A stretch of DNA of 64,000 nt from Klebsormidium nitens (taxonomy: Eukaryota > Plantae > Klebsormidiophyceae), in the NCBI GenBank assembly GCA_000708835.1, contig DF237417.1, positions 9,999 through 73,998 of the forward strand, in the 5' to 3' direction. Under the pieces are notes generated by a model. The model was not told the origin of the DNA, did no database searches, and saw only the letters and a list, made by a program, of their open reading frames with translations. Both the position numbers and the translations under genes were made by a program. Shown piece after piece: positions 11,498 to 58,499 of this stretch (its first letter is position 1; the number at the start of each line of letters is the position of its first letter).

Positions 11498-14400
11498 ATG
11501 TCGATGTCAAAGAGCAGCAAGCTGCTGCACCACATAAATTACAGGATGCGGGTCACATTGCAGGACGGGCGGCAGCTGGTGGGAAAGTTCATGGCGTTTG
11601 ACAAGCACATGAACCTGGTGCTGGGGGATTGTGAAGAATTCAGAAAATTGCCTCAGAAGAAGGGCAAATCTGCAGAGGACAGGGAGGAGAGGAGGACGCT
11701 GGGGCTCTTGTTGCTTAGAGGAGAGGTAATTTTGCTGGCGCCTGATGGTTGCTGAATACGAATCAGTACCTTACTTGATCTGCTTGTTGTACAAGTGGCG
11801 GCGATGAAGAAGTTGCATGTGTGCAGTGTTTGCATCAATTCTCCTTGTTTGGTGAATCTATTTCATCTCTTTGACCTACCTCGTGAGTTTGCCGGAATGC
11901 GGTACTGATTGCGCTGCTTTTCTGCTCAACCATTACCATCGGTGGTACTACAAATTGGTGCATTGTGATCGTGCAAAGCACCTTCTTTAAACTGGTGCCT
12001 CTAGGTCCAACATCCAACACACTGTAGCTTCTTAAGCAGTCGCTAGAATGTAGCGCCAATCAGAAATGCAAGAGTAATGTGTCTGATTTTTTCAAAAGAA
12101 GTTGTTGGCAAGTCGGAAGATGGAGATTCTTGTCAAGTATGATGAATTGCTTGTTTTGACACCTTTTGGCCACCTTGCTCGTTAATCTGATTGGTTTGTG
12201 AGTCTGTTACTCTGCACTCATGTCTTACAGAGTATTTTTACATTTACGTATCTCATGGTTCTAGGGAGGAGATGGGAGAAGCATTGCCTGTTGTTGCTGA
12301 GCGTCACAGTGTGAGCATCAATTTTCTGAGTTCTGCCAAAATGAGGCTATCCTGGTCGCCCGCAGCTCGTATTTGTGTGATTTAGAAAGACCATCTTCTC
12401 ATTAGTTTTCTCAGCGCTCAAGTGTTGCTGTGCTCTGATGTGATCTGCAGGAAGTCGTGTCACTGACTGTAGAAGGCCCGCCGCCGCAAGAGGAGTCGCG
12501 AGCGAAGGCAATGGCCGCTTCCGGAGGTCCAGGAGTGGGTAGGGCGGCAGGTAAGCTCACAGATTGGTGACCCATCTTTATGGTAAATAGAGTACTCTGC
12601 GACGCAGGTTCCTCCCAGTGAGCTTGAATGTCCCATTGCCTACATCATGCTGGCGTGGTCTATTTGCAGTTATCTTGGCCGCACTTGTTAACACTCCTTG
12701 GCACTCTTACTCTCGAGAGCCCTCTGGACTGAAATCGAAGTTGGCTGATCGCTTACATTTTCGACAAGCACGATGGTATGCTTCCTTTTGCATGTGCATT
12801 TTCAGAGCAGGCTTGCCGTAGCCCTGAAGCAACCCCAATTCTCAAGCAAGAGCCACTCAACGCCACTTGCAAGGCTTCTATCTTTTTCAAAGCCTACTTT
12901 GGCTTCTCAGACCTCATTAAGCGCGCCCCTCTTACCCACGCCCCATTCTCGTCGCAGGCAGGGGTATTCCGACTGCCCCCCTGGGTCAAGCCGCGCCGGG
13001 TTTAGCGGGGCCAGTTCGTGGGGTGGGGGGCCCAGCGGCAGCAATGATGCAACCCCAGGGACGGGGGATTGCAGCAGCAGCAGCCCCAGTGTCATACGGA
13101 GCCCCCGGTCAGATGCCCCCCGGACAGAGGCCCCCAGGCACGATGCCGCCGCCGCCAGGGGTCGCTCCCGCCGCTGGTGTCTACCGTCCTCCGCCAGGTA
13201 AGCGAATTTGGTCCTTCGACAGTTTTGGTCCACTCCATGTTGCATTGCATCGGCTCATGGAGAGAGAGTGGTGTTTTATAACATCGTAAAGGTGGAGGAC
13301 ATGGACCGTAGGTGAATGTTTAGCAACAAGGGAGAGCTGCGGTCAGCTTTGACACAGGTTTTTAGTTTTCATCCAGAGTGTACGAATAGGGTGGTCAAGG
13401 ACAGCTGAAGAGTTGCCTTGGGGCTTTGGGTTGCTAAGGCTTGAAAATGCAAAGCGTTTTGAAGAGCGGCATGCTTGTGCACCAGCCCATGCTAGCCCGT
13501 TTGCCTGGCCGAATCTGGACTTGAGTCGTGTTTGCAACCATAGCACCAGGGACGTCAAGACGAAGTCCGCTGATGAAAGAAAGTAGCCGCATGTCTGGAG
13601 AGTCTGTCTTTTCGCCTCTTGAAAAGTGGACAGCATTGTGGTTCCCTCGTATGTTGAATATGTCCTGAATATTACTACGACTTTTGAAGTCGCTGCTGTT
13701 TCAATGTTCGTTTTCCTGAGGGGTTTGAGGGACAGATTTTCTGGAGCACCTTAAGAGGAGCACATCAGATTTGCTGAGCAACTTAGACGTAGCGCAGTAT
13801 GTGTTTCAAGGGCAGGGCTTCATATCATGCCCTGGCTTTGTAATTCTCAAAAAGGAACCGAGTAGGATTTGCAGCAAGTATCTTTGTCACAACCACGATC
13901 TGGGTATATCATTGCCTCATCATTCAAAGCCTACTTTCATGTCTGCTCGGCTTGGATCAGGCACTTTTACACTTTCGGCGGCAGGTTCGCGAAGCCTCTT
14001 CTTTTTCAAGATTCAGTCGTCCTCTTTACTTACATAGTCTTGGTTCTAGATCTCCGGATAAAGTCCCAAGAGTTTAAAGCCAGGCTTGACTTGAACTCAA
14101 CTGGAGAACCATCCCAACAAAGTCTCCTTCCGGTTATCCAGGTGCTCCTCCTCCCGGCTATCGACCTCCCACAGGTGCTCCTCCCCCTGGCGCCCCCCCC
14201 GTTGGCTTCCGCCCCCCTCCTGGAGCCATGCCGCCAGGTACGATCAGAAAGATTGCAGCTCTGCCGTGGTTTTCCTTCTTGTATACCTGTTCAGCAGCGA
14301 TTACGAACACCTATGTGCATCTCTCTCGACAATCGACTTGCCGAGAACCTGCTCCTGTGATCGATGGTGGGGCAGTTGCATCATTCTTCTGGTTAGATGG

Positions 14401-52900: not shown

Positions 52901-54134
52901 CTGCGGCGCTTTGGCGGGCCGTACTTTCTCGGGAAGGAGGTGAGCTCGACACGGAGAGGTTGTGATATTCGTAGGCGAGCAACGAAGTGGAGCGGCCACA
53001 TGATTGGTTAGCCTTTTCCTGAACACTTAGTCGTGGCGCCGAGGATTAGAACCCTTGATGCTCGATTGGAATTCCGTCAGATTTTGACTTCTTGAGTCAA
53101 ATGAAACAGAAAGATTGATTCTTGGAAGAACGTGACGGCCCGACTGACGTACCAATGACAGTTGCCACTCTTGGCCGTGATGTTTTTGATATTCAGTTGT
53201 CCGGATGGGTTTTGCTGATCTGCGAATCAGTTGTCAAAACGTCGACCCTCCGAACCAAGTTTTCCGGGCACATTGAGAGTTGCACCTTGGGCAGAGAGCA
53301 AGTTTTTCAATTATGGTTCCCGTTCCGTCCCCGCAGTTCTCCATGATCTACGCCGTCTATTCCTCTGATGTGTACAGATCTTGTCGTCAGGCCGTTGACT
53401 CCCCGGATTAAGTTCGTGCACATTTCGACGAATGATCCTCATTGTGACGTTCGTTTTATCTCATCGTAATGGCAAACTTTTCTGATCACGCTCCCGTATC
53501 TCTCCCGCAGTTCTCCATGATCGACGCCGTCTACGCCCCCTTTCTGGAGCGCATCGCCGCGAGCGTGCCCTACTACAAGGGCCTTACCGTGCGCAACAAC
53601 AAATGGTCCGCCGTCAATGGTTGGTACGATGCTATGGATTCCCGGCCCGCGTACCATGCCATGAAGTCGGACGACTTCACGCACGTCCACGATCTACCCC
53701 CCCAAATCGGGGAGTGCTACCACAACGACGCCTCGAAGGATTATTGGGCGCTGGTTGACGGAAAGGCCGGCAGTTGGGACTTGCCGTTGAAACCGGAGAC
53801 TACCGGATGGGGATTTGACGAGGGAACTGCGGGGAAGGGCGAGGCCGCGTATAGTCTGGTTACGAACCACGCTGCCGTGGTTAGGTTCGCGTTGCGGCCG
53901 CTGAGAAACGACGCCGAGGCATACGCCGAGGCGGTAGACGTCGTGTTCAGGTACGTTGCGAAGGCGTTGCTTGAGGGAACGGAAAAGGCGGGGGAGTTGC
54001 CGGCGGGTTTGCCTAAGCAAGTGAAGAAAGCGGTGGAGCATTTGAGGGATAACGTGGGTGTACCGCGGGATATGAGCTACCCGGCGGCACGGCAATTGCG
54101 GGCGCACCTGAACTGGGCTCTCCGCCAATTGTAA
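49906..54134 (+). CDS. Glutathione S-transferase family protein with a predicted plastid transit peptide. Exons: 49906-50390, 51013-51193, 52781-52939, 53511-54134
   Basis: [59 protein letters not shown] (Cys-type GST N-domain); C-domain FSMIDAVYAPFLER..SDDFTHVHDLPPQIG..VGVPRDMSYPAARQLRAHLNW. Confidence 0.9.
52141..52850 (+). repeat. Echo array of the GST exon-3 acceptor and 5' end
   Basis: ag|GGC.TGCT.CGC.TGGAGCGGCA..TTCGGCAGCTG-like copies start at 52141, 52300, 52440, 52614 and (real) 52781. Confidence 0.85.
53325..53545 (+). repeat. Echo of the GST exon-4 acceptor and 5' end
   Basis: cccgcag|TTCTCCATGATCTACGCCGTCTA at 53337 versus the real cccgcag|TTCTCCATGATCGACGCCGTCTA at 53511. Confidence 0.88.
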
Positions 54135-55690
54135 GGTCTGTCCCTACCAAGCAGGTTTGATTGACAAAAACGCTTTAATATAAGCAATGCGCGCCTATCC
54201 TATGACAGACCGACAAAGGCAGTGAGACCGGTCAAAGGACTGGTCAAAGGCATTCTGCTGGTGTTCGAACCCTAGGATAAGTAAGTAGCACCTTCACCGA
54301 ACACGATTTGGCGGAATACTGTCGATTACAGTCACCATGAAGTCCGCCGCGATGTTTGCAGGTTCTTGCTACGGTACTCCTATTGTGATAACAGGGTGGC
54401 TCCAATAGGCTGGAATCAATTCATGACGCTATGAAGAAAGTCTACTGCGCCCGCTTGTTGAACTTTCGATGCATCATACATGTAATTCTGGTAACTTGGA
54501 ATGATGTGCTGGTCTAGTTATCGGTTTCGCATGGGTTGAATCCGGATTCCGTATTAGTACATCCGATCCGATCGATGATCTATACATGAGCAGGCAGTCC
54601 CGATCCTCAAAGAAATGTATGTGCCATGCAACGCGCGAATTTACTTGGCTAAATCTGCTACGTAAACTGCATAAGAGCTAAATTGTAAGAGTCGGACTCA
54701 CAGGAAAGTTGAAGGTGCCTGGCCGTTGCCTTGAACGAATCAGCAAACTTCTAGATAAGCTCGAGATCGCCTTCGAAGTGATTGTGGCCAACATAGCATT
54801 TTCGACAGCTGACTGTGAGAGGTGCGTGCGTGCGTGCGCAACAATACTGTTCAGGGTTTCTCGCTTTAGTACCATGATCCCTTTCAACCGAATGCATTTA
54901 AAATTGGGGCGCATGCATCCCGTCTCCTCTAGAAAGTCCGGTCCAACCGTTCACTGACTGAAAACTTCGTTGGCTTCAAGTATGTCGAGACCAAGGAATG
55001 CTGGCACTTCCCTCGAATACTGATGCACAGGGGTCTTCTACATTCCATGCACTGACGTACATGCAAGTCATCGCTTGCATGAGAAGAGGTCTTCATGCAT
55101 CCACCCTGTTGCCAAATCACGGGTTATTCTTGAAAATCAAAGTTTCAAACTTTCCCATGTCATCGAACAATGGTATCAAAGTCAGTGCACGAGTCTACTT
55201 GATTTGCTCACTTGAATTGGGCGATGCTCGGCCAATCTATCAGCATAAAATCATAGTAACGCTTCGAGAGGCAGATGGACGTATCACATGCCCGTAGTAT
55301 CTATCACAGTAACGCGAGCGTCCACGATTACTTCGCTGACCTATCTGTGATCCTCGGTCTCCAAGTCCGCAATCTAAAATCTGGGCTTGAAAGGCTAAAC
55401 TTAGGCCAGCCACCTTTAGGACGGTAAAGTGGCAGGCGCTGGGACTTTTAAATGCAGAAGTTCACGAGGGGGCAGAGGGCTTTCGCTTTATCGATCTATC
55501 TTTGGAATCCATTGTGAAGCGGTGAAGTGGTTTGGCAAAAAAAATTTGGTCTCTCTACGACCGATACGTTTCGGGCCTTTTCGAGTGGGTTCAGCGGGTG
55601 ATAACTTCGGTCGCGAAGCTTGCCCGGGCTTGGTTGCTCGTGCATGCTGTCATCGGTATCGAAATCAACGGCTCCTCAGCTCTCATCTTC

Positions 55691-55731
55691 GGCCCACAAG
55701 CAGATCATCATTTTCAAGTGACTCCTTATAA
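55691..55731 (+). promoter_or_regulatory. Putative upstream Pol III elements: USE-like GGCCCACAAG and TATA (TTATAA)
   Basis: A CCCACA core about 68 nt and TTATAA about 30 nt upstream of the tRNA-like 5' end, roughly 24 nt apart. This resembles plant type-3 Pol III promoters. Confidence 0.4.
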
Positions 55732-55759
55732 GCAGCCGACGAAAAAAGGACATTTGTTG

Positions 55760-56026
55760 GGGGCTGGAGCTCAGTGGTAGAGCGCCAACTCGGATGAGGG
55801 CAAATTCGCCTAGCTTTGCATTAGGGACAGGGTCCTGAGTCTAGACTGTATGCAGTGCACGGCTACTCCCAGAATGGGACGTCGGATGTGCGTAGGGATA
55901 GGTGCATACCTCAAGCCCGGGGCAGTAGTGTCGCCCTGTAGGCTTTCAGACTTATCAGACCTCCGGGTGCCCGCGATAGCCCGACCCGCCGAGTGAGAGA
56001 CGCGGGTTCGAATCCCGCCAGCTCCA
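55760..56026 (+). ncRNA. tRNA-Ala-like RNA with a 195-nt insert in place of the anticodon loop (tmRNA-like architecture)
   Basis: Acceptor GGGGCTG(55760-66)/CAGCTCC(56019-25) with G3:U70 and A73; D arm GCTC-AGTGGTA-GAGC; T arm GCGGG-TTCGAAT-CCCGC; helix ACTCGG(55788-93)/CCGAGT(55989-94) closes the insert. Function is unproven. Confidence 0.7.
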
Positions 56027-56029
56027 TCC

Positions 56030-56033
56030 TTTT
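56030..56033 (+). terminator. Pol III T-run terminator
   Basis: TTTT begins 4 nt after the discriminator A. No CCA is encoded. Confidence 0.5.
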
Positions 56034-58499
56034 CTGCGGCGCATCAATCGAGCGCCAATGCGGATTATATCAGCTTTAACCCCCGCGATGCTTCTGCGTG
56101 CATATATGGAGGCTCCAAGCCTTGCCATGCGATGGTGAAGCACGTGACAGGCAAGTACAAAAGTAGCGCCAAGCGTCTCCCGTTTAACATGTAGAGTCTA
56201 GAATTTCTGATCGCTTTTGCACGTGCCCTGAGTGACAGAGTGAATACGCGGTCGGAGCGCCCCAACTTGGCCATTGGGTTCTCCCGAGGAGCTGACCCGG
56301 GCTTAATCGTGGGCTCAACATAGTACCCGCCACTGGCTGCAACTTGACCTTCTGCTACAGTCAAGTCCGGACGACTGATCTTGCAGAGCGTCTCGTACCT
56401 TCTACGTACGTTCCGGCACGCAGCTTTATGGGAATTGCAACTCAACGGCCTTGGGCTTTCCTGAGAATATGCGCAACTTAAGTTAAACGGTGAAACTCTT
56501 CTGCTGAACCAGGACCTCTCGTTAATTGATTGGAGACCTTAGTATCACCTTATGCCCAACTTCCGAGGAGGTGCCAACCGTTCGAACGACCTTCGCCGCT
56601 CCCGGATCCAGATGCAACATGCGGATTGATGCATACATGATACTTCGTGCTTGGAGTACGTACTAGTCTGGGCACCTAATTGGCGTTAGAACGCTGAGGT
56701 GCAATTGCCTCGTGTCGGTCGCTTTCGGATATGACGTCGTACGACCAACTCAAAAGCCACACTGAAGCATAGGTCAAATTCCGACGAGTCAGCATCAGGC
56801 GCGGCTAAGTTCCAGCCAGCTTCGATCTGTGAGACTGAAGGCTCTCGTAAGGGTGGACCAGCTAACGGGCGCAAACGAGAACACCGTCTGAATTGGGTTT
56901 GCATCTGGACTTCTTAGGAGCACCCTAATCATCCTCCAGGGTGTGGAATCTTGCAGTCACGGTATTGCGCGCCTTGCTTGAAGGGGGCTGTGACTGGTCC
57001 GTTCTCGGAACTTCGCGTGACGTGGTACTTGTACTTTTTGAGCGGTAGTAAGTGCTCAACAAGGTATTCGTGTACGGTATGCCAATGACCATTGACTTTG
57101 AGATTGTGCGCCGAGAGGTTCACCATTTAGGAAAGCACGTAAGAAACACTGCCCGGAAGCTAATTAAGTTCGAAAGAAGCAAGCTGGTTGTCCTGATATC
57201 CTCCTTTGGAGTCACGTCAGCTTCCGAGTCGTACGTTCTCGGAAGTGGTTCGATCCATCGCCCTTCAAAAGAATGTCCAAAACCCAACTATGCGAGAACT
57301 CAGGTCGAAGGATGAGGCTGTCATGCAGCTGGCGACGGCCCGGGGAAATCTATGGATCTGAGAGAAGGAAGAGTCCGGATCATGAGGCGAGATTAAGAAT
57401 TAGCGAAAGACGCATGATATTCGCTGCCCACTAGAAGGTCTTCAACTCAACCTCAGACATACATATGGTGGCTTTCCCCAAGACGTCAGTGCCAATGAAT
57501 CTGACGTTATCAGATTCTAACGGTGCATGTACATTATTTATCACACCTGAAATCTTTCAAGCCGTCAAGCATCGCGTCGACGTCGGCTGCGGGTCGGAAG
57601 CACTTGCAAAAGTGAAGAAGTGGTGATGGCGAGACAAGCGTCTTCTGTTAGCTTCAACACCGGTATCGCTGTTATTTTGAAGCAGGCATCATTGGCGCCA
57701 AAATCTGACAGCTACCTTGCAAGACTAGGGGGTCAAGAGGTATGGTTTTATTCTGCAGTCTTCGAAGCAGTGGGGTCTTTCTTCGTGATGCAAGTCTGCA
57801 AGTCGCTGTCGTCAATATTGCATGCAGCCTGATGATCCTGAGCGGCGCGGCCGCACGCACAGTACTGTAATGTGCGCGCGCGACAATGGGACCTGAGTCA
57901 AAGATGGAGTGAGATTTGTCCGGGGGCTTGTTAGGAAACCGAGCAAGTCCACCGGATGGGGGTTTGTCGAACTTGCCAGTCCCGACTCCCAACGCGGCGA
58001 CCGCGGCAGATGCAACTCACCGGTAATCTCGCCCGGTCAAATGTGTTACTGGTAACGAACCCCCTGCTACGGACCGTACTGGCGCGCCAGGGGGATTGCT
58101 TGTGACGTCAGCGTTGTGGTGCTTGGGAGTTTCCGAGGTGACGACGAGACGACGACAGAATGTACTCTCTAGAGTCTAGGACTAGGCGACACAGGCTGGT
58201 CACTTCGCACGGGCATTGTCGCCAGCGTCTATTGCAATGGCGCCTTTTAATTGGATGATATTGATACAGGATTTCCAGGCGGACTTCATTTGACTCTTCG
58301 AAAAAGCTGATTGAGAAAGCTGATGAGCACTGAGTGCACATTGTCTCGGCTCAGGGTTCAAGATGGAGGTCTAGAATGGAGTGCATTGCATTATCAAGGG
58401 TGGCGACATGGGGGAAGCATAAATTAAAGGTGGTCTCCCTTGGCATTTCAATCAAAAAGCGTTCTTCAGGTGCTTCTGGGTCCCAAACCCCTGACCAAA

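Follow-up and report, generated by a model that had tools for sequence, protein, structure and literature searches.

A 64,000-nucleotide stretch of Klebsormidium nitens NIES-2285 contig DF237417.1 (assembly GCA_000708835.1, bases 9999-73998), referred to here as the window, contains a tRNA-Ala-like element at 55760-56026 on the forward strand. Read directly from the sequence, the element consists of a complete tRNA-Ala "top half" and, in place of the anticodon loop, a 195-nt insert. It is intergenic and lies in an unannotated 4.3-kb gap between an upstream glutathione S-transferase (GST) gene (GAQ88907.1, stop at 54134) and a downstream cytochrome P450 gene (from ~58500). One neighbouring ORF is 97% identical to the K. 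nitens protein KFL_004680090. Each tRNA half occurs once in the window, where 0 chance matches are expected.

The 7-bp acceptor stem pairs GGGGCTG with CAGCTCC (56019-25), giving G3:T70, and is followed by the discriminator position A73 at 56026. Both the D arm (GCTC-AGTGGTA-GAGC, 55769-83) and the T arm (GCGGG-TTCGAAT-CCCGC, 56002-18) are canonical, and the elbow and tertiary nucleotides are complete (A14, G18, G19, G15:C48, G26/A44, T54, T55, C56 and A58). Position 8 (55767), a nearly universal U in tRNAs, is G in K. nitens and T in a relative represented by contig L001. In place of an anticodon loop, the 6-bp helix ACTCGG/CCGAGT closes exactly 195 nt. This helix also appears in the MFE and centroid folds and, with a 4-nt variable loop (AGAC, 55998-56001), is in register with tRNA pairs 30:40 and 31:39. 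Among the outer anticodon-stem pairs, C27:G43 is formed, and 28:42 (C/A) and 29:41 (A/G) are mismatched. An initial annotation had described an acceptor stem with G3:U70 and A73, canonical D and T arms, a G instead of U at position 8 and a helix around 195 nt; direct reading agrees on every one of these points and fixes the insert at 55794-55988. The features of the element and its surroundings are collected in Table 1.

Table 1. Features of the tRNA-Ala-like element and its upstream and downstream surroundings, in window coordinates.
Feature	Position	Strand	Basis or comparison
Two upstream blocks kept in the relative, ~-133 to -80	55627-55680	+	Alignment to L001
14-mer TCGGCCCACAAGCA, -71 to -58, with CCCACA core (55693), USE-like	55689-55702	+	Identical in L001
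TATA-like box TTATAA, -34 to -29 (TATAA from 55727)	55726-55731	+	Partly kept in L001 (GATAAA)
Acceptor stem 5' strand GGGGCTG, G1-G7; G3 opposite T70	55760-55766	+	Identical in L001
Positions 8-9 and D arm (A box)	55767-55783	+	Sequence; L001 alignment
G26, degenerate anticodon-stem 5' strand CCAAC and closing-helix 5' strand ACTCGG (55788-93)	55784-55793	+	Sequence
195-nt insert replacing the anticodon loop; unique sequence	55794-55988	+	Repeat, fold and Rfam scans
Closing-helix 3' strand CCGAGT (55989-94) and anticodon-stem 3' strand GTGAG (55993-97)	55989-55997	+	Sequence
33-nt 3' module: stem remnant, AGAC variable loop, T arm, acceptor 3' strand, A73	55994-56026	+	Common to the putative family copies
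B box GGTTCGAATCC	56005-56015	+	Inside the 3' module
TTTT, likely Pol III terminator, ~3-4 bases after A73	56030-56033	+	Sequence

The element carries the features of a type 2 Pol III gene at the sequence level, with an A box (55767-77), a B box ~237 bp away and a downstream T-run. No TTTT occurs within the element itself, and the consensus of the organism C (X8) paralogue contigs described below likewise has CTTTTCTG just downstream. Additional signals lie upstream. The two conserved blocks include an 18-nt run, CTCGTGCATGCTGTCATC, that is identical in K. nitens and L001; they may act as a further promoter element or mark another small RNA. The CCCACA core of the 14-mer resembles the land-plant snRNA-type USE, with 7/11 positions matching the consensus, although the Klebsormidium USE may differ. 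The USE-like and TATA-like boxes are 24-25 bp apart, to be compared with the 23-24 bp that separates USE and TATA box specifically in the Pol III genes of Arabidopsis thaliana (PMC8287931). The upstream boxes and the TTTT run are thus compatible with Pol III transcription, and the proposal of a Pol III-type gene with A and B boxes in the initial annotation appears sound, with a TATA-like box upstream and TTTT after A73. None of the RNA runs listed holds the 267-nt element, and one run has a few words in common with the flanks only. Most of these runs are probably poly(A) libraries, which rarely capture Pol III RNAs, making absence from them weak evidence. Total-RNA libraries of three Klebsormidium species are described in PMC8287931 (BioProject PRJNA700859).

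Standard family scans pass over the locus. Across the whole 64 kb, ARAGORN at default settings reports no tRNA and no tmRNA, and Rfam at gathering thresholds gives no match. In a permissive Rfam search (E<=10, 501 nt), the sole notable match is tmRNA (RF00023), scoring 28 bits against a gathering score of 47, and the alignment occupies the acceptor and T-arm columns only, with 326 model positions skipped. The same search finds no group I intron, RNase P or other family, and matches to families of the mascRNA, tRNA-miRNA and YrlA type are noise (14 bits). A group I intron was rejected as a candidate: under permissive filters, RF00028 does not match anywhere in the 501 nt even at E<=10, and the exons rebuild no tRNA. 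ARAGORN run at an 80% threshold returns 'Tag not identified', and allowing introns together with lowered thresholds produces only forced, mutually inconsistent calls, such as a Leu-GAG tRNA with a broken D arm.

In a metagenome scan, the 28-nt 3' end of the element matched, letter for letter, four AT-rich bacterial tmRNA genes and nothing else; these genes also begin with GGGGCTG. They are found on four metagenomic contigs (L004-L007) of 25-28% GC and lack an encoded CCA. The likeness to bacterial tmRNA ends noted in the initial annotation is therefore real, extending to 28 nt at the 3' end and 7 nt at the 5' end, and is what would be expected of two tRNA-Ala mimics. Other parts of that annotation fared less well. 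The tmRNA analogy is not supported beyond tRNA-Ala mimicry, given an RF00023 match that is below threshold and restricted to the ends and no ARAGORN call at default. A ribozyme or group I cargo has no Rfam match even at E<=10. The description of the insert as a structured domain is likewise not borne out by folding energy, its fold being no stabler than those of shuffled sequences: relative to dinucleotide shuffles, z is -0.44 for the whole element and -0.62 for the insert with its closing helix, both ordinary values. In shape, the predicted structure is a long, imperfect rod.

The insert is unique in sequence, with no second copy elsewhere in the 64-kb window or in the fetched loci, and it contains no tandem or internal repeats longer than a 10-mer. 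Its sole terminal inverted repeat is the 6-bp closing helix, and no target-site duplications or flanking direct repeats were found at the element. An origin from decayed copies of the gene's own parts was rejected, as there are no tandem repeats and no significant likeness to either module. Two further readings were dismissed by eye: a box C/D or K-turn interpretation of the AUGA loop beside the closing helix, where the D box is not in place, and a telomerase RNA, where the transcribed strand has no template for the Klebsormidium telomere repeat. At 55977, a position unpaired in the predicted fold, K. nitens has T, and C is present in 4/4 other covering runs (an air metagenome and organisms B, C and D).

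Contigs from these four other DNA runs, the air metagenome (X5) and organisms B (X6), C (X8) and D (X9), were aligned to window positions 54000-58000. Organism B contributes a single 3053-nt contig that is collinear with the locus. Within it, block 55572-56062 takes in the promoter region and the complete element and ends 36 nt beyond it; over these 491 nt, 30 substitutions and 16 gap letters leave ~91% identity. The five other aligned blocks show ~78%, 82%, 75%, 85% and 92% identity, with unalignable stretches between them; the 92% block is short (56826-56909). The 3' part of the insert and the 3' module are also found in X5, X8 and X9 over ~150-250 nt, carrying 5 (plus 10 gap letters), 11 and 3 substitutions, respectively. 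Misassembly, raised in the initial annotation as a possible objection, was checked, and the junctions between insert and tRNA halves are genuine because independent contigs of other organisms and samples cross them. In organism D, a contig lacks 185 nt downstream of the element (56199-56385); close relatives are polymorphic for this indel.

About a dozen further contigs from organisms B and C (X6, X8) match 55994-56026 only, most with 1-2 differences. The sequence before the 3' module in these contigs resembles neither the window locus nor that of the other contigs (loose-end agreement 0.53-0.67), and no D arm is recognisable in it. These contigs appear to be sister genes with different preceding sequence.

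A Logan contig from another relative, L001, was retrieved via the GST protein, and its GST exon is 87.7% identical. Between the GST gene and the end of this contig, the sole alignable DNA corresponds to 55613-55789, comprising 150 nt upstream at 75% identity and the first 30 nt of the element, the 5' module, at 27/30; the remaining ~1.5 kb between the GST gene and 55627 gives no alignment. Homologues in relatives, which the initial annotation proposed to look for, are thus present both in organism B, whose contig spans the element, and in L001, where the 5' module and the 150 nt ahead of it are retained. The three differences in the 5' module are G8->T, which restores the canonical U8, G10->A and C25->T. 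The last two convert D-stem pair 10:25 from G:C in K. nitens to A:T (A10:U25) in L001, a compensatory change observed over 30 nt in one orthologue. By a rough estimate, a compensatory double change among three substitutions has a 1-3% probability of arising by chance, which points to selection on the RNA fold. GCCAAC is kept in L001, and the contig stops exactly after it. A de Bruijn assembler stops where a repeated module ends, so this break indirectly supports the view that the family is multi-copy in that genome.

In a more distant clade (L002, L008-L010; GST exon 76% identical), the element is absent within 1.7-10 kb downstream of the GST orthologue, suggesting that the element is young or that the locus has been rearranged. 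One of these contigs, L010, from a JGI metagenome relative, carries a chromodomain/integrase fragment of a Ty3-type retroelement at 13054-13763 on the reverse strand, 2.4 kb downstream of the GST orthologue and at about the same position as the tRNA-like gene in K. nitens. Searches with parts of the element returned no match for the 5' module in bacterial and archaeal genomes and viral contigs, none for the 33-nt 3' module in a metagenome scan, and none for orthologous contigs when the frame across the insert served as the query. An upstream reading frame (55526-55777, +) resembles Listeria-Bacteroides repeat (Flg_new) proteins with an E value of 3e-24; this likeness was rejected as chance because it amounts to ~28 bits per repeat, summed over up to 12 repeats per protein.

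The best explanation, held tentatively and at somewhat short of an even chance, is a Klebsormidium-specific family of tRNA-Ala-derived Pol III genes in which the frame is under selection and a long variable sequence occupies the anticodon position. The anatomy, the cross-species conservation and the compensatory D-stem change on which it is based are observed; transcription, processing, charging and function we infer. Several findings weigh against this reading and fit a decaying tRNA-Ala pseudogene, an unlikely alternative that nevertheless carries appreciable weight, in which the anticodon loop was lost to an insertion or an expanded intron and the copies are alike through recent duplication or gene conversion. 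These findings include G8 in place of the near-universal U8, an insert fold of ordinary stability, the absence of a transcript from the listed RNA runs (weak evidence, as noted) and the absence of the element at the GST locus of the more distant clade. With no excess fold stability and with unrelated sequence beside the 3' module in the copies, a functional cargo is not evident, and the modules could owe their likeness to gene conversion among paralogues, with no function at the RNA level. The base-by-base orthologue comparison also covers 30 nt in one orthologue, and the 91% identity in organism B lumps promoter, frame and insert. The two anticodon-stem mismatches fit decay as well, and the insert 9-mer TCGCCTAGC (55806-14), joined to C27, would read like the 5' strand and AGC anticodon of a plant tRNA-Ala; this short Ala-AGC-like match may be a relic of an ancestral anticodon arm, or chance. 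A pseudogene does not readily account for the element block being the best conserved long stretch in the organism B contig, for the 5' part and its upstream region being the sole alignable intergenic DNA in L001, for the compensatory D-stem change or for the conservation of promoter-like boxes upstream. In addition, modules that are near-identical across copies next to wholly different sequence beside the 3' module are consistent with lasting selection on the frame. A mobile origin, whether as a tRNA-derived SINE, as another mobile element or through a transposon inserted in a tRNA gene, would explain a multi-copy gene with tRNA-derived ends in several genomes, but is very unlikely: the insert is single-copy in the 64 kb and all fetched loci, there are no target-site duplications and no terminal inverted repeat beyond the closing helix, the acceptor 3' strand is kept after the insert, unlike in SINEs, the locus is syntenic in two relatives, and removal of the insert restores no tRNA.

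The remaining alternatives would give the insert a definite role in making or using a tRNA. A working tRNA-Ala gene, with one or more unusually long or non-canonical introns spliced out to leave a normal tRNA-Ala, is rather improbable, although conserved exon-like modules around a variable middle are the pattern expected of introns, and ~34% of K. nitens tRNA genes carry them (PMC13578239). Intron models were searched exhaustively for one and two introns and compared with shuffled inserts. A two-intron model that removes 55786-55805 and 55815-55990 yields CTCGC-CTAGCGA-GTGAG, with anticodon AGC, but shuffled inserts contain equally good hidden exons in 32% of cases when the arm has 5 pairs and in 96% when it has 4. 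Hidden anticodon exons were accordingly rejected, the Ala-AGC arm being at chance level (equalled in 32% of shuffles). The junctions of this model form no bulge-helix-bulge on a hand check for a 4-bp central helix and 3-nt bulges. As the initial annotation had stated, no canonical splice rebuilds an anticodon arm: an intron at 37/38 leaves the loop TCGGATA, in which position 33 is C, position 37 is the pyrimidine T and the anticodon is the non-alanine GGA. At its default threshold, ARAGORN makes no call when introns of 0-400 nt are permitted, and streptophyte algae, according to a review, mostly have canonical introns only. A eukaryotic analogue of tmRNA, charged with alanine, entering stalled ribosomes and carrying a tag frame in the insert, is extremely improbable. 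The G3:U70 identity pair, the 3' end shared with real bacterial tmRNAs and a short frame from a GCA codon at 55800 speak for it. Against it stand the weak, ends-only RF00023 match, the ARAGORN results at both thresholds, the full D arm, unlike tmRNA, and the lack of any detected pseudoknots. Paralogues carry unrelated sequence before the 3' module, so that no common 3' portion or conserved tag frame is evident there, and we know of no cytosolic SmpB partner.

Under the favoured reading of a selected gene family, Pol III would transcribe the element from its internal A and B boxes, aided by the USE-like and TATA-like boxes, and would stop at TTTT. The intact acceptor/T-arm half would be sufficient for the transcript to be cleaved by RNase P and RNase Z and to receive CCA. 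Alanylation would probably also be allowed, because AlaRS reads G3:U70 and not the anticodon. Judged from these sequence elements, tRNA-like processing and alanylation of the RNA are mechanistically plausible. The RNA would be unable to decode because it has no anticodon loop. The tRNA-like frame would be the conserved, selected part, with the insert behaving as a variable passenger or spacer that may be kept or excised at the internal loop beside the closing helix. It is a doubtful further step, and one offered as speculation, that Klebsormidium makes Pol III RNAs with a chargeable alanine-tRNA top half and no anticodon that are matured, alanylated and active outside normal decoding. Equally speculative roles for such RNAs might include ribosome or nascent-chain quality control, regulation of AlaRS or of tRNA-processing enzymes, and service as precursors from which linear or circular insert RNAs are freed by the tRNA splicing machinery.

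No description of such tRNA-Ala-framed insert RNAs was found in the literature. If expressed, the family would show in the eukaryotic nucleus an architecture for which bacterial tmRNA is the example to date, an alanine-chargeable frame around a long internal domain, and would add a new class to the few tRNA-derived Pol III non-coding RNAs. If silent, it is an ordinary though unusual pseudogene family. Because Klebsormidium is positioned near the base of the lineage that led to land plants, and its tRNA genes are unusually rich in introns, the family could illustrate tRNA-gene repurposing or the expansion of tRNA introns. Loci of this kind are missed entirely by standard tRNA and Rfam scans, a point of relevance for annotation.

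The element can be compared with several known systems. Like tmRNA (RF00023), it has an alanine-identity acceptor (G3:U70, A73) and a T arm around a long internal domain. Unlike tmRNA, the Klebsormidium element is nuclear; its D arm is complete, its A and B boxes are of the eukaryotic type, and CCA is not encoded. Neither pseudoknots nor a tag frame are recognised in it, and its copies carry unrelated sequence beside the 3' module. Intron-bearing nuclear tRNA genes share the arrangement of tRNA exons around a non-tRNA stretch in the anticodon region, with a middle that varies between copies. They differ, whether their introns lie at 37/38 or are of the Cyanidioschyzon merolae BHB type, in that the element has no anticodon loop beside either module and no bulge-helix-bulge motif at its candidate junctions. 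At 195 nt, the insert also far exceeds the introns that the review calls 'unusually long' (~64 nt, O. tauri). Plant type-3 Pol III genes (U6, 7SL, MRP and telomerase RNA) offer a possible parallel in layout, with a USE-like element at ~-70, a TATA-like box at ~-30 and a T-run, a likeness in which the USE assignment in the element rests on a 6-nt core; those genes are without internal A and B boxes and without a tRNA fold. In MALAT1 mascRNA, gammaherpesvirus tRNA-miRNA units and bacterial YrlA, a tRNA-like fold likewise occurs in a non-decoding RNA, where it would attract RNase P, RNase Z and the CCA-adding enzyme, which would then shape or stabilise that RNA. The Klebsormidium element differs from these three in that both tRNA ends frame the foreign part internally, and in that it looks like an independent Pol III gene.
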